64,000 bases of DNA, from positions 328,765-392,764 of the forward strand of contig NW_019217998.1 in assembly GCF_002571385.2 (NCBI RefSeq). The letters are read 5' to 3'. Numbering within the stretch: position 1 is the stretch's first letter; each line of letters opens with the position of its first letter. Of the stretch, positions 18,794 through 30,900 are shown one piece after another. The stretch comes from Stylophora pistillata (lineage: Eukaryota). A program made the translations under genes and the position numbers. Below the pieces are notes generated by a model. That model had not been told where the DNA came from. It searched no databases and saw only the letters and a list, made by a program, of their open reading frames with translations.

Positions 18794-18987
18794 TCATTTC
18801 TTTGAAATGTTAGACACTCTTCTTGTCCTTGCATTTTCCAAAGCCCTGGCCTTGCTCTTGCTACAAATCGAGGAGTGCTGTTCGTCATCCTGTTCCATAC
18901 AATCATCCCCACAGTACCCTTGAGTGTTACACTTTTTGCACCACACTTGAGCTGGCTTACCACACAGGCAGAAATACTCGCAGCTCT
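18794..18987 (-). CDS. Terminal exon encoding a MYND-type zinc finger
   Basis: FCLCGKPAQVWCKKCNTQGYCGDDCMEQDDEQHSSIC fits C..C/CxxC/YCxxxC/HxxxC spacing; acceptor TTTATGACAG| is phase 1, matching the donor at 19546. Confidence 0.7.
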
Positions 18988-21900
18988 CTGTCATAAAGAG
19001 ATAAAAAAAAATCATAATTAATGAGGGGCACTAGTTTATTAGCATTTAGATGCTATTTTGTGCTACCCTCGCTAAATAAAGACTTTACTTACTTACTTAC
19101 TTACTTACTTACATAGCTGTCAGTGTTTGCAGATCTAAAACCTCTTGGAGCAATTCACCGTTTTCGAAGGAAATATCCGGAGAATAAGCAAACCTAACCA
19201 CGCCCCCGTGACTCCTGATCTAGTTAGTATTTTCACAAACCTTTCCTTGTTAGAGAATCTTTGATGGTGACTGCTTAACTATCGCAAAAAGCACTATGTA
19301 GCCCAATGAGTAAATTTTTGTCTTCCCACAACTATTTTGCAATGCAATTTTAGTCCTAACTAATACTGGAGTTGCAATGTTTTGTGTTGGTTTTAAGTCT
19401 ATTAGTCATCATTTTTTCTTCGTTGCTGTACATTTTCGTCATTTTTGTGTAGGAAGAAAATTAAAAACTGATAGATTGATGAGAATATATGAATAAACGC
19501 ATCTCGGGCCATTTCTCATCTTAAAAACATATCCGAGAGCTTTACCTGCACCGTGGAACACTTTGACATAGACAGTCTTCTTATAAAGCGCGGATACCAC
19601 TAATTGTGTCTCCGTTCGAGGGTCAATGATTTTAAACTTTCGTGAAATAAACAATTATCTCACTGAACCAAGGTAACCGGGCAGCGAACGATTGATGTCC
19701 TCCCTTAATTCTGCTAATGTTCCTCCTTTCTTGGCGTTCACTATTCCTGCCATGTGCGCTAGGATCCCCATCTCTGCGTTTGGTCGAATCACCTTCACTT
19801 GCATTTTGCGTCGCTTTACGATTTGATCTACATAAAGCCCAACGGAAGAAAAACGTCGGAATGACATCAGTTCTCGACATTTAAAGATAATCCAGAACAA
19901 GGGAGACTAAAGAAGGGTCTGCACCCTACACAGACTCGCAGAAAGACGCTTATACTTCTTACCCAGTATAACACGACGAGGAGTGTTGCTGCCTCCCCGT
20001 GGTGTTTCACCCCCAGATGATACCATTCCTATCCGAAGGTGCTCCTTCCCTACGGTTTTTTTTAGGGATTATCCATTTATATCTGGACTATAACAAATAC
20101 TAATTTTATTCTTCAGGTATGAGCAAGTGGTTTTCTACTGCAGGTTTGCAAATTTTTGTCGCGCACATGTGTCTACCCCTTCCTATGATGCCTTTTGCCC
20201 TTAGAGTATTTTGGCTATTTTCCATTGAACCTCCTGATAAAGATTAATTTTCTAGGGCAGATTGGAAGTTCTGCACGTGCTTTACCCATTGCGCAAAACC
20301 ACTTTTATGGTGCCTGTCGTGTAAAAGGATTTAGACGCAAAAGTAAACCACAATCATTTTATTTTTTTTTTATAACGAGGTCGCCCAATCACGTGACCCA
20401 AACGTGACAAATTCAAACGCACGCAAGGCGTGCAAACGAGATAAAAAATTTTAAAAAAGCAAACGAAAGTAAGTGTCAATGTTCAGTCGCCTCTAACTCG
20501 TGGATAGTGCGAAAGATTAAGTTTACTCCTCTGGTATTAAGAAGAGGTATCCTATAACATGTTCTCACCTGTGACCATCAGAACACCCGGCATGTTTTCC
20601 CCCAAAGATGACGCCCGCCTACGCAGCATAGCCTCTTCTCTTGGATTTTCATCGAAGTCATCATCATCATCATCGTCAAAGATTCCCCCTATTACCAAGG
20701 TTTCTTCCAAAGCCGAAACAGATTTGACAGGGGATTGGATCTCAGTCCTAAAGCTTGTAGTTGATACCGAAAGTTCAGGTGAAGTGGGAGGAATCGGGGA
20801 AGTGTCCGTACCCTCACTCGACCGAAGACTGCCTTTTGAACTGTGGACTGGTGAAGATTTTCTGCTGATATGTGGAGTGGTTCTGGGTGTTCCTTGTTTG
20901 GACGGGACGTTAGGAAATGCAAGAATTGGTTTTGGGCGATCAGTGTCATCTTGCGATGTCAGCTTTGGACTCTAAAGAATAAGGCATAATTTTCAGTATT
21001 TCAAGAATGGCCTCACCCATTATTATCTGGCGTTCTCACTGTGCAAACTGTTCACTCAGTACGAGCATGCAAAGTTGTAGACGAAGCAACTAAAAAGTTG
21101 CTTACCAGCGTGCAAAGCTACGAGCATGCAAAGTTGTAGATGAAGAAAAATTATACAAAATATGGTACTGAAGGCCGCCAAATTACCTTAGAATGTCAAT
21201 ATCGGTGTGCTCTTTTCAAAAAGGATCGAAGTAATTGTATATGAGGCCCAACCTTCTAGAAGGAAGGTTATATTCTCACCAGCCCAATAACACAACTTAA
21301 CGACCTGACCAGGACTCGAACCCAAACCTCTAGATTCACGGTCAGTTACGTTGGTCAAACCAGCATTCTTTTTTTTAAATTTCATTAGAACATCTCACCT
21401 TAGAACTTGGCAAAGGTTCTTCTATCTCTTCAAAAGCTGGTTCCACAGTTTCTGCAAAAGCAACTGGAGTTGTACGTTTTATTTGATCATCGCTTCGCAT
21501 CGACTCTACAGAGCTGTGCACAGACCAGGTTGCACTTCTACTAGGTTTATGATACTTTGTTTCTACACCAAAACCTTTAGAGTATTTTTCACTGTCAATG
21601 AATATGTCCGGAGTTTCTGGCGGCGTTGGATTGATTTTTCTCACTTTGCTTCTCCGGCACCGACAGTAAATTACAATGACAACTAGAAAAATGACTGAAA
21701 ATCCTACAACACACGCAATAATGATGATGTAAAGCGCCATGCCCTCTTCGTCTTTAGGAGCATCCACTACTTTCTTTTCCTCACCATCCACCCTCATGAT
21801 CGGTCGCGTTGTAAGTGTTGCGCCATTAAACTCGAATTTCAGCCCCTCTTTCACGTCGTCCCAAAGGTTGTCTACCATTGCTTGTTTCTTTGATTGGCGC

Positions 21901-24900
21901 AAAGTCATGTTGAATGTGGCTACGATGCTACCCTTTCGTACGCGACAGTCAGAGAAAGTCGCATCAGGGTAGATCTTAGATAGTTGGTTCTCGCAGTAAC
22001 TTTGAAACTGCTCTTCTTTGCCTTTGATTACCTGATCGTAATCACCTTCGAAGGTAAATTCCACAGGTATCGTAACGAGCGGATCGTCATCGTTTTCATT
22101 GCAAGTTGCGGTTGACTCGGAAAGTTGCAATGTACGCTGTGGTGTAAAGCTCGCCTGATTTTTAGTCCAGGTGATGGCATCCAAATTGGAGACAGGATTC
22201 GAGGAGGGGAACATCGCGACAACATGTCTCGTTCCATCGATAGGTAACTCTTGCAGGACAGTCACACCCACGTCGGTAGCTTGCAGCTCGGAGTTTGCAG
22301 TTGCAATAATGAACTTCTCGTTGGCAAAACTAGCTTTTATTAAGCCATCTACGAATGAAGCACCGTCTATAGATTGTGGAGTTCCTGTGGAAAACGTTGT
22401 TCGTGCAAGTTGTGCACCTACGTCTGCACCCTGATGCGAGAAGATAAAGTATACTTCTGTTTGGGGGTTTACAGCTGGTGATCCATCCTTGTTAGCTAGC
22501 TTCAGAGAGAGTTCTAGGCCACACCGATCAGAAGACTCCTTGTTGTGATCAGGTACTTGATATGTCAGCTCAGTCACAAATTTTGCGCTTTCCAGGTAAA
22601 TAAGCGACAAGAAAAAGGCATCGTTAACGTCAATGACCTCGTCCCAGTTAACATCCATTCGTTTCTTCATCTCGTCAGTGAATCGAGATTTAGAAGAGGC
22701 AGTGATGTAACCACTGATGAAAGCGACATCAACAATGTCGAACCTACAGTCTACATCTACGTCACCCGATATTTCCTTGGAACATGGAGAAACTGTGACG
22801 TTCTTACTTGGCACCTCTGAAAGTTCTCTATTTACCGTTCTGAAAACTTCAACCATGACCCCAGGGACTCCATTTTTCTTTGACGTGAATGAAAGCTCGC
22901 CAACACTTTCCGAGAAGGCTTCTGATGCTGCTATTGGTCCAAATATGATAACTGTGTTTCCCGCCACTTTATACGGTAAAACAGTAGTAGCTCTGTCTAA
23001 CTGTAAGTCATCCAAGTCATACTGAATCTCTACCTGTACTGCCAAGATTCCCATGGAGCCAGGGTTTACCCTGATGGGCATTTTCCATGTATCGTCTTTA
23101 TCAAGCGACGGTATGGGCGGACCCTCCTTCTCTCCGATATCAATCTCACCGACCCTTGGCTCCACGTTGCAGTAAAAGGAAAATTCGTCTGTGACACTTG
23201 CATTTGCAATGAGGCTGGCCGAAATGGTGACACGGCTACTGCTGTCTGCCATCAGGGTCACTACGCCAGACAATGCATCGATTTTTGCTGAAGCAGGGTT
23301 GCTTGAAGAAAACGATAGCAAGCCGCTGTAACTCGTGAAGTTGTTGATGAAATAGCTCGATCCATCGCTCATTAATATTTCAGCAAACACCGAGGTAGTT
23401 TTTTCCATAGCCAGGCCACTGAGAGTCATATTGACATTTTCCAAGCCAAACCGAACGATGTTTACAGGTTTAGAGACAATTGAAGACAAGGACAAGTTAA
23501 GAACTGCTGCATGACTGCGCGCGAACTCTGCTTGTAACGAGACTTCTCCTCTCAAACCACTTCCTTCGATCGAAAAAAGATTGCTTGGAGAGGGTCCAAA
23601 TTCATAACTACCTCCTATCTGCTGAGCGTTTTTAAACGTAAAAGAAGTGTTATGCTTATTGGAAACATCAACGACTTGTTCATTTGTCAGGCCGAGAAGA
23701 ACTTTGAGTAACACCCGCTGGTAATGTCCTTGGATAACCTGTTTTAGTTCTGTAACCTTCGATGCGCCGGAAGTTTCAGGATAAGGCACAGCGCTGATAG
23801 CAAGGTTAGTACTGCCCACCACAGTAACGTTGACTTCAACAGAATTGACATTCGTGACATGTACGATTAGTTTGCCTGTTCCGAACAATCCTTGGTTGTT
23901 TGCTTCGATGTAAGGTGCGCCATTAGAAGTAGCACTGAAGAGACCATTAGATTTCGAAGAGTCGTCAATTGTATAACGGTCCCCTTCTGAAGTGATATCC
24001 ATCTCCGTTCCATTCTCATACACCAAAAGCACCTCCAAAAAAGATTTATGGGGAACGCCAGCCAAACCAGCTGGATTCATTGGAGAGGCGATAAATGCCT
24101 GTATGAGTCGAGCTTTAGCTGTGTACATCCCGCTGTCATCGATGTTTATGACCCGTACCCTAAGATGAGCTGTGATTTTCTTCCTTTTGCTAGGGTCCAC
24201 ACTTCTGTCACTCACAGTGACTTCCAAATTGTGCTCACCAACTGTTTCAAAATCCAACTCCTTTGCTAATGTTATGACACCTGTTAAAGATTTGCAAAGA
24301 AGGATTTTAAAAACTTAACCTCTGACAAAAAATTGCGAACAACAAAGACCAGACAACTTATAACAGACAGGAAAACTATGCCACACTAAAAACTAAGTTG
24401 AAGGAAATGGCCTTTAATGAAAAGAGGAGATCGCATAGAAAAAGTCTCTTCCCTTTATTGCGAGATTGAAATGAGTAGCTCGCGCATGTTCAATGAGGGA
24501 AAGGAACGAGAGGTAATTTCATTGGTATTTTACCTACTGTTACTCTGACTTACCCGTGACGTTGTCAATATCGAATGTTCCCAAACTGTTACCAGCAGTT
24601 AAGGAGTAAGACAGAACACCATCTTCACCGTAATCCCCATCAGTTGCATTCACATCAAAGATAACTGTTGCTATGCTGGTGTTTTCTCTTAGTTCTATTA
24701 TTTGGTTATCAGCATGATCCAGGACTGGTGTGAAGTCATTAACGTTCTGTACAGTGATGACCAAAGGTACAGAGCTGTTAAGCGGGACAGGTGTTCCTGC
24801 GTCCTTAACAAATACAACCAGTTGGTATGTACGGTCAGCGGTATGGTTTTGAGTCTCTATATCTAGGTCCTTGGCTGCTCGGATGATGCCTTGCTTGGAC

Positions 24901-27900
24901 TCGATGCTGAAAAATCCTAGGTCGTTGCCGCTCGCAATAGAATAGGTGAGCTCACTATTGGATCCTGAATCAGGATCATTTGCCTCCAAAGTGATGATTT
25001 CCCCTCCAGCGGTAACAGTCTCGTCGACAAGTTTAGAGTAAAAGTTTTTAAAGAAGGTAGGGATATTGTCATTAACATCCTTCAGACTAATATGAATGGT
25101 GGTCGTTCCAGATTTGCGGTTGCTGGTTGCTTGGTCTGTCGCTGTGACAATAAGACTATATGTACGCTGAACTTCTCGGTCTAAGGCAGCATCGTTGGTT
25201 ATAATACCATTTGCAGAATCTATCATGAACCTTAGATCGTTGTTCCCGTCTGTAATACTGTATACTATCTCTCCGTCTATGCCAAAATCCGCATCGGTAG
25301 CATTTGCATTGTAAATAACGCTTCCCTCTACAATGTCCTCATTAACTATGACTGACACATCAGAGGATGCAAAACTTGGTGCGAATTCGTTCTTGCGAAT
25401 CACGTGCATGATGAGTGTAGTGTTTGAGGAAAGCAACGGTGTCCCAGCATCCTGCGCTCCCACAACCAGAGTGTGCGTCCACGTTGAAAGCTTCCTGTTA
25501 TCCATGTCGAGTGAGGCTTAAGGGTCGAAAACATTAAAATCAGAAACGGCCATGAAGAAGACCAAATTACCAACTAGGTAGGTATTTATTGGAAACAAAC
25601 GGTAATAAGGGTTCATTAAAGCTATTGTAACATTCAATGCTAGATGTATATCCAACATTTACATTTTTGGTTCATTTGATATTCCTCCCGTAAAAAAATG
25701 TCTGTAACTATAAACAGATTAAGGCTACCAATTTTTGCGACATCACGCGCTGTATTAAAAAAAAGTTTCATTACAAAATCTTCAGCGCAAGAGCAACAAA
25801 ACTATTAGGACTGTCCCTCGATAAAGGGGAATATTTAACCCCGGGGGATTCTTTGGAGAGGAATTGGTTATTAAAGAAAAGGGCCGAACCGACAAGAAAT
25901 TGATATTACAATGCAAGCCAAAAGCTGCAGGAAAGAAGCCATTTTCTTACCGTTTAACGTGAGCTTTCCGTTGGAAGAGTTTATACTCCATAACCCATCG
26001 CTAAACTCAGTTGAATTCCTGACCAAGATTGAATACGACACGAGACCATTCAAACCACCATCGGGATCCGAAGCAAGGAATGTAAATACATCTGATCCAA
26101 CAGCTGTGTCTTCATCAACATTCACTTCATACCGAGGCTGAGAAAATGTGGGTGCGTTATCGTTCAAGTCCAACACGCTCACGTACACGGTAAATACCGC
26201 AAACTTCACGTTTCCCTCATGGTCCGAGTCACGCGTGTGGATTGTCAGAGTGTAAGATGGGGAGGTTTCGTAATCGAGTGAAGATATAAGCATCAGTTTT
26301 CCAGTTGATGCATTAAGGGAAAACTTCCCTTCGTCGTTACCTACAAGTACAAATGTTACCATCAAATGGACTTGCTACTCGTAAAAATAGTAAGATTAAT
26401 ACGGAAAATTTTAACATAGATCTTTGTTGTTCGTTCCTTTGTCATATTTTGGGTGATTGAAACTGAAAGGGGACGGAATTTACAATTTCCCGAGTGATAG
26501 ATGATGGAAAATAGCATGTAAGGTAACAAAACCACGTTAATCCTTGACTGGAGCTTGCCTAGATATTTTTGTTGATTGAGGGTAAAAACTTGAGAGAATT
26601 ATACATTTTTAAGCCAAACATTTTGAAGATTTCAAGTGTCTCAGGTCAGAGCTTTTCAACGTAAAGAAAAGTCGAACACAGACTACATATCACGTGGGAA
26701 AATATTCCCTGCTAATGATAAACAGAGTTGCAGAACCAACCCATCCGTTACCGGCTTGAAAAGGTCAAAGGCACTGAGCAAGAAAAGATGTTCAAAGAGA
26801 AAAAAAAGACATAAGCTGAATTGTTTCACTCGTACCCACCTGAGCTAATGACGAAAGTAACCCGTCCCTGCTCCCCATAGTCCTGGTCTGTAGCGTTGAC
26901 ATCAAACACAAAAACTCCATCCCCAGCAGGCTCATTCTCAGCAAAACTGAAGTTAAACGAGGAATTATGTTGAAGCTGCGGTGTGAACTCATTGACAGGC
27001 GCGATGCTGATATTGACTGTAACACTTGTGTTCATACTTGGCGTTCCCATGTCTTTAGCAAGGACAAATAAAGAATGATTGAAATCAGGTGTCGGTTCTT
27101 CATCCAAGTCGACCGAAGCATTTACTTGCACCTCCCCTGAAGTGCTGTTAATGGTGAAAATTCCAGCTTCGTTCCCTGCTATTATAAAATAAAGGACTTT
27201 GCTGTTTAAGCCTTCATCAGGATCGTGAGCATTGAGTGCGATCACGACGTCACCGGTAGCTGCATCCTCCTTGACAGTAGTGGCAATTGATGGGTTGTTA
27301 AATGAAGGAGCATTGTCATTAATATCAGAGATAGTAACTACTACCTGTCCGTCTGTGAAGCGCACCTTTTCAGCAACGGCACCGTCGGATGCTCGCACGG
27401 TGAGCGTAAAAACGGCGGTCGTCTCACGGTCAAGCTCTTCGATGGTTGTGATAACTCCAGTCGAGCTGTCGATAGAAAATTTGTTCCCAGTGTTCCCAGC
27501 AACTATAGAGAATGAAATATCTCCTTGAGAACCAGAATCTTGATCAGTTGCGGTAACCGTGATGACGGTCGTGCCATTGGAAGTGTCCTCCGAGATAGAT
27601 GCGCTGTAGGAACCATTATCAGGGTCAAATATGGGTGAGTAGTCGTTGACATAACGAACTTCGAAGGGCTGGGAGTTAACCTGGATAACCAAACAAGCAT
27701 GTAAATTTAAATTAATTAGTTGCGCGAGCAACTAGTTTCAAATTTATATTCCTTCAATCATGAATTAAAGCCGATAAATTCACTAACAGATATTGACAAT
27801 CAAGTTCTCCAAGACAGAAAAACGCTCGAATGTTTTTTCATAACACTGAGAAAATATCGGGACCCAAACGATCCATTAAGATCACCGATCACTTCACGTG

Positions 27901-30900
27901 CCCCTCTGCCAATGTAATCTATGGCATAACTTGCACTTATTGCAAAAATATTTACATCGGCGAAACAGGCAGAAGACTAGGTGACCGATTCCGAGAACAC
28001 CTTCGCGACGAGGAGAGGAATGACAAGAACATATCGAAGCCAGTCGCTTGACATTTCAATTTACCTAATCATTCTAAGCAACATATAGCAATCTGCGGTC
28101 TTTCCTTACACTTAGGTAGCACGGAAAGCCGTAAAACTCTTGAACAAAAGCTCATCTTTCAAACCGGCAGTCTAAATCCCACAGGTATCAACGAACGCTT
28201 TTCATTCCACTAATTTATTCGTATTTTTCTCGTTGCCATGTTCCCGCCAATAAAGTAGCTCCATTTTCTGCCTTTAAAAGCACACAAAACCCACAATTCC
28301 TCTATTCGCTCCGACGAAGGGCTAACGCTCGAAACGTCAGCTTTTATAATCGTAACGGTGGCCAATTTACCATTTCAACTTTGTTGATATAATCAAATTG
28401 TTTTTTAATATGTTGACATGGATGTAAACAGGAAAATCTTAAATTACCTGTCTTTACCTCGCCTAACAAACTATAGCCAAACCTAGATGATTGAAATACG
28501 TTTAATTTCATTGCCACTCTCAGACTAATGGTTCATATTACAGTTCCTTTCAGTGATAACTATTGCCTGTGAGGAAGCAATTGTTCGTTGTCATTGATGC
28601 TCTCATTTTTTTTGGCAATCATTTTTCAGTTGTTACCTTGAGTCTCTGGGAAATCTTGTTATTTATTTTTCTCGAGTTGTTAGTGACCCGTACATTATAA
28701 ATTCACAAGCATACTACTACATACCACGTGGCCTTGGTTGGACTCGAATACCAGCTCATATCCAATGCCATAGAAAGAAACAGACAGGTTCTTAAACTCC
28801 ACTCTCTCTTCCTCCACTGTAACATTTAACACTCCACTTAATGTTCCATTTAAATCAGATGGTTTGAGCGAAGCAGAAATAGACCAGTAACCTTTCAGTG
28901 GGTTTCCACGCATGCGCGTACCAAGGTCTCTTACTTCCACAACTGGGGGAACTCCAAATATTTCTGATTGATTAGCTTTGTCGGGCTGTGTAATGACTTC
29001 TAGGTAGAATTCTCGCGCACTTATGTTGAAAGTCTCTGAGGTTACGGATAGACTTGAATAGGAAGAGACTGGTTCTGTGATAACGGTGAACTTCATTTGA
29101 CGCTCTTGAGCCACGTCGAAGAAACGCAAATCTTGAAATTCCACGCGCCCATTGGTTTCAACTGGAAATAAAGTAGTACCGTTGACTACAGAGTTCTTAG
29201 CACCGACCATTGTGGCATTTATCGACCAAGTTCTCCCTCTCCAACCGATGTTATCTACCAGCGAGTCTGGATATGCATTCCTTATCTCTACAATCGGCTG
29301 ACTGCCACAGATCACTGTGTCATTACAATCACCAGGTTGTTGCGCAATTTTGAGATAAAGCATTCTCTCAGATACATTAAATGCCGTGGAATTGCCAATA
29401 AAGGCATAGCTTGAGGCCGGATCAGTCTTGACCTCAAGTGCTAGGATGTAGTTTATTCCAGAGATGTCGATGCTGAGGTTTGAAAACGAGGCTACACCTT
29501 CGACAAAGTCTACTTCAGCTGTACCATTTACATGTCCATTGTTATCCGCAGGATTAGCCAGTGAGGCAGTGAACAACCAACGACGTCCTTTCCAGCCAGT
29601 GTTGTCCACAATTTTACCGTTCGCTGAATCTCGAACCTCAATTCTGGGCTGCTGTCCAAAACTGACTGTTTCGTTCGCGTCTTCGGGTTGGGTGGTTACA
29701 GTAAAATACATGATTCTTTCTTTGACCTCAAATGACTGCGAAGTAGCGTTAAAGCGAGAAGCTGCTGGTTTGTTGACATAGAAGAATAATTTGTAGTCAG
29801 AACCGTTGTGAGTGATACTTAAATCGGTGAAATTCGCCCATCCATTAACCAGTGTCACAGTCACATTTCCTTCTAACACCGCCATGGAGTCCCCGGTGTC
29901 ATTCTGTATGGTTGCCATGACAGTCCACTTACTAAGCGAACCGTGCCCTAAGGTAGTTACTAACTTGCCATCAACGTCCACAAGTTTGAGTTTGGGCTGT
30001 GCAGTGAACGGTACAGTCTCGTTCCCGCCACTCGGCTCAGTCACCACCTCCAATCTAGAGGGAATAAGGAAGCTGAACACGTTACTTGCTTCTTCTGCCT
30101 CCTTCTCAGCTTGGACTTCGTCATACCGAAGGGTAGAGTTGCCTGTTACGTTCTGTTGATCTGAAAGACAAACACATTATTTATTGACGTAACTGGCCCG
30201 TGTCATACTCGTCTAGATAAGCTTGTAACTTTAAATTGAAGAAGTTGTGATGAGGCCACTGTTGGACAGTTTTGGACGAGACTAATTTTTCAGAATTAAC
30301 TGAAATGCTCCAGAAAAATTTCGTTACTGGAGATGTTAGAATCTAAGAAACCTTTCATTTAGCTGCGTCAGAGTGCAACCCAGGTGACACCGAAATGTGA
30401 TACCATAAAATTAACAAATAGTAAACACCACAGCGTACACTATTGAGTTATGGATGCACGCGTGAGGTTGCTAAGCACGAAAGCGACTCTAGCTTCTTGA
30501 TTGCTTAGCAAACCTCCCAAGTGCATCCATAACTCAATGGTGTACGCTGTGGTGTTTACCTTTGTTTTATAACATAACATTGATACATTGTAGCAAAAGA
30601 GTTCCCTTTTATTTAAAAAATCTTACGTGACCATAAAAAACAAGCGCGCGCGGAAAAATAGTCTTTGCATTTGCTCACGTCAGCAGCGTACACCCATGGG
30701 TAAATGGGGGACGCTAAATTGACCAATCAGAGCGCGCGCCTTACTTTGGTTATGTTATATATTGGCTTCCGAAAAAGATGTGTTAATAACAGGCAATAAA
30801 GAAGACTTACAAGTTTCGTTGGTAGCTCGAACACCTCCGGTCGGGTCAACAGGCTCAGGGATTGGGTCCGCTATGGACAGCGATACGATTTCAGTGTTGA

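Follow-up and report, generated by a model that had tools for sequence, protein, structure and literature searches.

The 64,000 nucleotides of Stylophora pistillata DNA analysed here (assembly GCF_002571385.2, contig NW_019217998.1, positions 328,765 to 392,764 of the forward strand; this whole stretch is called the window, and its first letter is position 1) contain a terminal coding exon that very probably encodes a genuine cohesin directly followed by a genuine dockerin, both related to the bacterial and archaeal families of these names. The explanation that fits the observations best, and which we regard as likely, is a true cohesin-dockerin (Coh-Doc) cassette in the membrane-proximal part of a giant cadherin receptor, for which a cis unit is proposed. 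Within the exon, BIG-like Ig domains come first, then the cohesin and the dockerin, next an Ig-like domain and a SEA domain, and finally a transmembrane (TM) helix with a short tail. A preliminary description, made from the letters of this DNA, had placed the pair at 22590-23111; the location is right, but the modules extend slightly further, with the cohesin at about 22788-23156 and the dockerin at about 22572-22775. The features concerned are the following (aa, amino acids; AF2, AlphaFold2).

21375 to 24281, minus strand: terminal coding exon of 2.9 kb; it has 968 codons before the stop (21375-21377), and its acceptor AG occupies 24282-24283
22788 to 23156, minus strand: cohesin module (aa 368-490), a beta sandwich by AF2 and fold searches
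22572 to 22775, minus strand: dockerin module (aa 495-562), with two F-hand repeats and three helices
22728 to 22763, minus strand: predicted Ca2+-binding loop 1, DVDVDCRFDIVD (aa 499-510), with D at positions 1, 3, 5, 9 and 12 and Cys at position 6
22620 to 22655, minus strand: predicted Ca2+-binding loop 2, DVNWDEVIDVND (aa 535-546), with D/N at positions 1, 3, 5, 9 and 12
22746 to 22784, minus strand: cysteine pair of Cys492 (22782-22784, in the linker) and Cys504 (22746-22748, position 6 of loop 1), from alignment A1

The dockerin is recognized by its two 12-residue loops, each with aspartate or asparagine at positions 1, 3, 5, 9 and 12 and each followed by a hydrophobic helix, which had been described before and are indeed present at a spacing of 36 residues; both helices are also formed in the AF2 model. 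The pattern D-x-[DN]-x-[DN]-x3-[DN]-x2-D is matched by just these two loops in the six-frame translation of the whole window, and shuffling of the terminal exon gave an expected count of 0.004 and not a single case with at least two matches in 20,000 shuffles. Therefore, the loop pair is not a product of chance. Pfam Dockerin_1 (PF00404, gathering score 22.9 bits) scores aa 498-550 at 20.3 bits within the full exon, at 22.7 bits within a 240-aa piece and at 26.5 bits in the isolated 67-aa module, and it matches 12 of 21 relatives at E<=0.01 (best 1.6e-7); scores of 28.2 and 24.2 bits in relatives exceed the threshold. When the Protein Data Bank (PDB) was searched by sequence, the sole chain returned was the type I dockerin 5nrm_B, at E 0.33. 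At the level of structure, VIA-align superposes residues 135-198 of the model on the Xyn10B dockerin of C. thermocellum (2ccl_B) with Z 9.0 over 62 of 62 residues at 2.1 Å and 26% identity, and the module reaches Z 8.0 against 4fl4_A over 66 of 68 residues. Both the duplicated 12-residue loop with its helix and a three-helix fold superposable on solved dockerins are thus found in this module, and its earlier assignment to the type I dockerins is borne out.

The predicted calcium ligands are strongly conserved. Among 192 modules of the family, loop 1 has D at position 1 in 89%, N/D at position 3 in 93%, D/N at position 5 in 94%, C at position 6 in 86%, D/N at position 9 in 82% and D at position 12 in 97%, and loop 2 has D at position 1 in 98%, D/N at position 3 in 94%, N/D at position 5 in 90% and D at position 12 in 97%. 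The ligands are also retained in the aligned orthologs that are 51-98% identical. Cys492 and Cys504 are both invariant in the 21-sequence alignment A1, and we infer a disulfide that would staple the Coh-Doc linker, which has a length of approximately 12 residues, onto the first Ca loop. The inter-repeat linker (22656-22727, minus strand) is about 12 residues shorter here and in the closest orthologs, whereas distant orthologs and paralogs keep these residues. Positions 10 and 11 differ between the loops as described earlier (I-V versus V-N); the single binding mode that had been read from them would be an extrapolation from clostridial dockerins.

The beta-rich domain upstream of the dockerin, for which a cohesin had been proposed, shows the expected fold. 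An AF2 model of aa 361-600, calculated from a 21-sequence alignment, has a mean predicted local distance difference test (pLDDT) of 90.5 and a predicted template modelling score (pTM) of 0.86. These 240 aa cover the pair and reach into the opening strands of the domain behind it, and values of this height over the whole span imply a fixed mutual arrangement of cohesin and dockerin in the model. Modelling of the module alone had been suggested as a check, and it yields both folds with confidence, the cohesin sandwich reaching a pLDDT of 96-98. In Foldseek about 30 of the best matches are cohesins, comprising types I, II and III as well as non-cellulosomal ones, with 3ul4_A at the top (E 4e-5) and a TM-score of 0.64 at a root mean square deviation of 2.6 Å against 1anu. 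The 14 best PDB matches of VIA-align are likewise all cohesins (Z 9.8-11.9, approximately 110 residues at 2.1-2.8 Å); the first non-cohesin has Z 9.4, and most other adhesin or pilin sandwiches lie at or below this value. The domain is thus modelled as a nine-stranded beta sandwich that can be superposed on solved cohesins.

Profile searches, also suggested before, recover the dockerin with the scores given above and the cohesin in the relatives, but not the cohesin of the window copy. With a gathering score of 24.1 bits, Pfam Cohesin (PF00963) matches the homologous domain in front of the dockerin in P0033 with 1e-11 (45.6 bits), in P0026 with 5e-10 (40.2 bits) and in P0123 with 3e-7 (31.2 bits); in a second gene of the same genome, two cassettes score 28.7 bits, which is above the threshold, and 23.8 bits. 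A family hidden Markov model (HMM) made from the relatives in turn matches the cohesin of the window copy at 2.6e-22. When alignment A1 of the whole protein served as a profile against the PDB, cadherins dominated the matches. In the ESM Atlas all neighbours of the 240-aa piece are bacterial clusters with Cohesin and Dockerin_1 (score 0.92, 195 of 256 features shared). A complex prediction with the cohesin (aa 368-490) and the dockerin (aa 491-560) as separate chains gave 0.20 and 0.25 at a mark of 0.34, which counts neither for nor against binding. Nothing computed here lends support to the functions suggested earlier, namely self-polymerisation, the binding of microbial partners and a single binding mode.

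The pair had been presented as an isolated curiosity. Judged by the sequences of its relatives it is, in contrast, one copy of a widespread and conserved cassette of Ig unit, cohesin, dockerin and Ig-like domain X, which is found in ancient cadherin families. An exhaustive HMMER search of the family gave 375 representatives at E<=0.001. Each close ortholog is a single exon of approximately 980 aa, with 37-65% identity; a search with aa 361-600 recovered 26 orthologs at the exon level, and further orthologs are 51-98% identical. Most other homologs have 1,300-8,000 aa, and in these the unit of Ig unit, cohesin, dockerin and domain X is repeated, approximately three times in the mapped examples of 6,000 aa. 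The large homologs also bear cadherin repeats and the Pfam domains TMEM132_3rd and Ig_TMEM132_4th to 6th; among the scanned exons of the window no TMEM132_3rd, 4th or 5th domain was found. Among 150 representative homologs, which contain 318 cohesin-type matches and 191 dockerins, a cohesin stands directly upstream of the dockerin in 177 of the 191 cases (93%), and a co-evolving unit therefore fits better than freely shuffled partners. The window itself contains a single Coh-Doc pair. The 240-aa module alone found no homolog at E<=0.01 among 196 short candidates scored with HMMER, a set whose length window leaves out the long relatives.

The same genome (398 Mb in 5,513 contigs) contains further copies of the cassette. 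A paralog on the minus strand of contig C84 (479034-481998, loci L002 and L006) has the identical order of Ig, cohesin, dockerin, X and SEA, and an intron lies exactly between its dockerin repeats, so that HMM positions 1-45 and 47-79 are found in separate frames. A giant gene on the minus strand of contig C3 (666580-682226, loci L005 and L007) has two Ig-Coh-Doc cassettes and more than 10 cadherin repeats, together with Laminin_N, a cohesin-like domain, TMEM132 Ig 4th and 5th, TMEM132_3rd and fn3. Its domains suggest that a lefftyrin-type cadherin has been retained in the same animal. More generally, the cassette-bearing cadherins of 3,000-8,000 aa with TMEM132-type domains appear, by sequence, to be ancient cadherins of the lefftyrin, coherin and hedgling kind.

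The exon belongs to a eukaryotic gene. Its frame on the minus strand is open from 24314 and has 960 aa when counted from the first listed start. The upstream exon ends with FDIDNVTG, followed by a GTAAGT donor near 24553, and the terminal exon resumes with VITLAKELDFE, which rebuilds the strand motif of a cadherin in frame, with one repeat spanning the intron. Because the in-frame join restores a cadherin repeat, the terminal exon is part of a spliced eukaryotic gene, and because the intron divides this repeat, the host gene itself is eukaryotic. The host protein is accordingly read from the sequence as a eukaryotic type I membrane protein that is joined to cadherin repeats by splicing, which agrees with the membrane protein described earlier. 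Cadherin repeats, a cohesin and a TM anchor, the combination that defines coherin-type proteins (definition cited in PMC6030884), are found in one polypeptide if the exon join is taken as predicted. The features of the host part are:

24132 to 24281, minus strand: C-terminal half of the last cadherin repeat, with LDxE...D.N.D motifs in the translation; orthologs match Pfam Cadherin at the same position
24543 to 27731, minus strand: cadherin-repeat exons preceding the terminal exon, from a Pfam scan
21666 to 21737, minus strand: TM helix (aa 841-864); behind it come a basic stop-transfer stretch and a cytoplasmic tail of 96 aa up to the stop

The TM helix has a hydropathy of 3.41, which is the highest value in the minus-strand open frames that lie between about 20,000 and 52,000 and have at least 70 aa, and no other strongly hydrophobic segment was found in such frames from the TIG exons to the terminal exon. 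Further upstream, beyond the cadherin exons, lies an open reading frame of 461 aa, and CEMIP/beta-helix, G8 and numerous TIG domains precede it, which gives the ectodomain a fibrocystin-like character. The 461-aa frame (28698-30080, minus strand) has no Pfam match at E<=0.01; it sits in an open frame of 493 aa (28698-30176), which has the beta-helix/CEMIP exons on one side and the cadherin exons on the other. It is plausible from this order that the TIG/G8/beta-helix exons, the cadherin exons and the terminal exon form one very large gene. On the other side of the terminal exon, the Cys and His residues of a short minus-strand frame at 18794-19015 are arranged as in a MYND domain (C-x-C...C-x2-C...C-x3-C...H-x3-C), and the stretch at 20552-20710 is acidic; joining the MYND-like frame to the terminal exon would require an alternative donor, since the exon stops at 21375. 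A run of 136 N at 51645-51780 is either an assembly gap or a masked stretch.

Three further domains flank the pair within the exon:

23142 to 24125, minus strand: Ig unit ('Nunit', aa 45-372, approximately 330 aa), conserved and always located before the cohesin, with three phmmer matches in each mapped homolog of 6,000 aa
22116 to 22589, minus strand: domain X (aa ~557-714), an Ig/FN3-like beta sandwich with an AF2 pLDDT of about 85-90
21768 to 22088, minus strand: SEA domain (aa ~724-830), from VIA-align fold matches

The Ig unit probably consists of tandem Ig domains of the BIG/TMEM132 type. Its ESM Atlas neighbours, which can be taken as a lead only, are clusters of Big_2, Ig_TMEM132_4th/5th and NUP210 Ig besides uncharacterised eukaryotic ones, some of them labelled Haptophyta, and the window copy of the unit has no Pfam match. 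A second AF2 model (aa 555-835; pLDDT 88, pTM 0.70) resolves the two domains X and SEA. The fold matches of domain X are weak and generic (VIA-align Z about 6.5), and the domain also follows the dockerin in several giant homologs. The SEA domain matches SEA5 of MUC16 (7sa9_A) with Z 9.9 over 101 residues, and other matches of SEA type, with Z 7.4-9.8, are 8gkl_E, 1ivz, Gpr126 (ADGRG6), TMPRSS6 and TROP-2. An alpha/beta fold of this kind is thus found beside the membrane with G-S[VI]V at the beta2-beta3 turn. Gly776-Ser777 (21927-21932) is located at this turn, which joins model strands 213-220 and 224-233, and is invariant in 24 homologs. Mucin SEA domains self-cleave at the beta2-beta3 turn, and the local K-G-S-I-V-A resembles their G/SVVV cleavage motif. 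By analogy, the SEA domain is probably self-cleaved at Gly776/Ser777, and if so, the receptor may exist as a heterodimer of non-covalently associated cleavage products.

We propose that the dockerin would fold around two Ca2+ ions, that the putative conserved disulfide Cys492-Cys504 would pin it to the linker, and that it would pack in cis on its own neighbouring cohesin. The outcome would be a rigid, calcium-dependent and mechanically strong joint within the extracellular stalk, which would sit directly above the probably self-cleaved SEA domain, and the latter could act as a force-sensitive link to which the joint would transmit load. A pre-formed joint in cis is favoured over a free intermolecular glue because of the 1:1 fusion, the short linker and the monomer pTM of 0.86; for the proposed cis unit as such we consider the chances to be evenly balanced.

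Several observations weigh against the assignment of the modules or against their proposed arrangement. Pfam Cohesin gives no match to the window copy even at E<=10, so that by its profile this domain would not count as a cohesin, and a profile of five cohesin sequences (A3, window copy included) ranks a solved cohesin first, yet with E 0.33. Because of these two results the cohesin homology of the window copy rests on fold and transitive similarity, and it is on the modelled fold and transitive homology that we conclude it to be a cohesin. In context the Dockerin_1 scores are slightly below the threshold (20.3 and 22.7 versus 22.9 bits). Bacterial dockerins usually have Gly at loop position 6, where loop 1 has Cys instead, and helix 3 has a Leu here, the family usually having Arg/Lys at repeat position 18. 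The high pTM might also arise from packing against domain X. The missing Cohesin match and the sub-threshold Dockerin_1 scores could suggest a chance resemblance, i.e. a generic sandwich beside an acidic EF-hand-like stretch, or a bacterial contamination. This was rejected and deserves hardly any credence, since two independent structure aligners rank cohesins first and align an entire solved dockerin, the loop pattern goes well beyond chance, relatives exceed both Pfam thresholds, and the exon is spliced to a cadherin repeat and resembles the surrounding window in its composition.

In a rival reading the dockerin would bind in trans, to the cohesin of another receptor copy or to the dockerin-less cohesin-type domains of giant cadherins, which would yield head-to-tail chains in the membrane plane or a Ca2+-dependent cell-cell adhesion and corresponds to the self-polymerisation suggested earlier. 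Bacterial cohesin-dockerin pairs are an intermolecular glue (PMC6030884), the cohesin-type domains of the family outnumber the dockerins (318 to 191), the TMEM132-type cohesin-like domains that lack an adjacent dockerin in giant cadherins might serve as free acceptors, and the short linker may not reach the binding face of the cohesin, canonically its 8-3-6-5 sheet, in cis. However, the strict 1:1 tandem in 93% of the cases, the short linker with its inferred staple and the high monomer pTM fit a pre-formed unit, the pair adjoins the membrane beneath thousands of ectodomain residues, which is unfavourable for contact between cells, and binding has no computational support; both the trans binding and its consequences are in our view rather improbable. 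It is also conceivable, but in our view improbable, that the modules are spacer relics, which have kept their folds without any contact between cohesin and dockerin and have their ligand elsewhere, e.g. in matrix or glycan. A plain spacer would have no need to retain both partners jointly, and clear constraint on the Ca ligands, on the Cys pair and on the tandem order extends across hundreds of modules, although cohesin-like sandwiches also match pilin and adhesin domains with Z 8-9 and the window copy departs from the helix 3 consensus and has lost approximately 12 inter-repeat residues. A receptor for microbial cohesin or dockerin proteins, e.g. of symbionts or pathogens, is a role suggested in the preliminary description, and it would be in line with the many small bacterial Cohesin+Dockerin proteins that resemble the module in language-model feature space. 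Nevertheless, the cassette is ancient, repeated within giant adhesion proteins and membrane-proximal here, and no close bacterial relative by sequence was found among the 196 short candidates, so that we think such a role very improbable.

The cohesin-dockerin interaction ranks among the strongest protein-protein bonds known and is regarded as a microbial device for building cellulosomes. Peer and colleagues are said to have listed dockerin-like modules in some lower eukaryotes in 2009. In the searchable literature we found no description of a dockerin beside a cohesin in animal cadherin-type proteins. Both module families are known, and cohesin-bearing cadherins as well as the cohesins of TMEM132 have been published (PMC6030884). 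Apparently new, in the literature checked, are the near-obligate Coh-Doc tandem in these animal proteins, the Cys-stapled loop of the dockerin, provided that the predicted disulfide is formed, the presence of the pair in an invertebrate receptor uniting a fibrocystin-like ectodomain with cadherins, and the SEA domain neighbouring the pair. Standard Pfam thresholds mostly overlook the cassette in the window copy. A dockerin with intact Ca ligands behind a cohesin is a concrete candidate for what the cohesin-type domains of animals bind, and the pair hints at a calcium-dependent mechanical joint directly above the SEA domain. With considerable doubt, one may go further and suppose that non-vertebrate animals have kept a working cohesin-dockerin system, in which the dockerin is a Ca2+-dependent high-force ligand of its own or of orphan TMEM132-type cohesins. 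If this were true, dockerins would be the missing partner class for TMEM132-like adhesion molecules, and Coh-Doc together with a self-cleaving SEA domain would be a mechanical module of early animal cell adhesion.

Compared with known systems, the folds of the pair are alike to those of the bacterial and archaeal type I pairs (PF00963 and PF00404; CipA cohesin with Xyn10B dockerin of C. thermocellum, 1ohz and 2ccl; the non-cellulosomal cohesin of A. fulgidus, 2xdh). The cohesin reaches Z 10-12 over approximately 110 residues and the dockerin Z 9.0 over 62 of 62 residues at 26% identity, and bacterial dockerins likewise have a duplicated Ca loop of 12 residues, with D/N at positions 1, 3, 5, 9 and 12 and a helix after each copy. 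In contrast to these pairs, the host is a eukaryotic cadherin-type membrane protein and neither an enzyme nor a scaffoldin, the modules are always on one chain with the cohesin before the dockerin, and position 6 of loop 1 is a conserved Cys that would pair with a Cys of the linker. The small bacterial Cohesin+Dockerin_1 proteins of about 200 aa, the nearest neighbours in the ESM Atlas, also have both modules on one chain and a similar length; however, they are free-standing and not parts of receptors, and HMMER detected no similarity among the 196 short candidates scored. With SEA receptors and mucins (MUC16, MUC1, TMPRSS, ADGRG6) the protein shares the membrane-proximal SEA fold with an invariant G-S at the turn, whereas the domains upstream of it are unrelated to those of mucins.

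The TMEM132 family, whose members are predicted adhesion molecules, also combines a cohesin-type domain with tandem BIG/Ig domains near a TM helix (PMC6030884), and Pfam TMEM132_3rd and Ig_TMEM132_4th to 6th are present in relatives of the window exon. The order in TMEM132 is, however, a cohesin followed by three BIG domains (PMC6030884), while the exon has Ig unit, cohesin, dockerin, Ig and SEA, and TMEM132 has no dockerin. According to the same source, eukaryotic cohesins were believed to be limited to choanoflagellates and sponges, and an adjacent dockerin goes unmentioned there; vertebrates are stated to have no detectable dockerin homologues, and the ligand of animal cohesins is left open (PMC6030884). 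The lefftyrin, coherin and hedgling cadherins of choanoflagellates and sponges have, as far as they are summarised there, the TMEM132 architecture together with cohesin domains (Nichols, 2012; Abedin and King, 2008; cited in PMC6030884). As portrayed in that summary, lefftyrin and coherin are likewise large transmembrane proteins that unite cadherin repeats with a cohesin. Relatives of the window exon bear the TMEM132-type cassette as well as Pfam Cohesin, and the second gene of the same genome resembles a lefftyrin in having Laminin_N, TMEM132 Ig, Cohesin, cadherins and fn3. What sets the gene of the window apart from both is its fibrocystin-like N-terminal part with TIG, G8 and beta-helix, and its SEA domain near the membrane.

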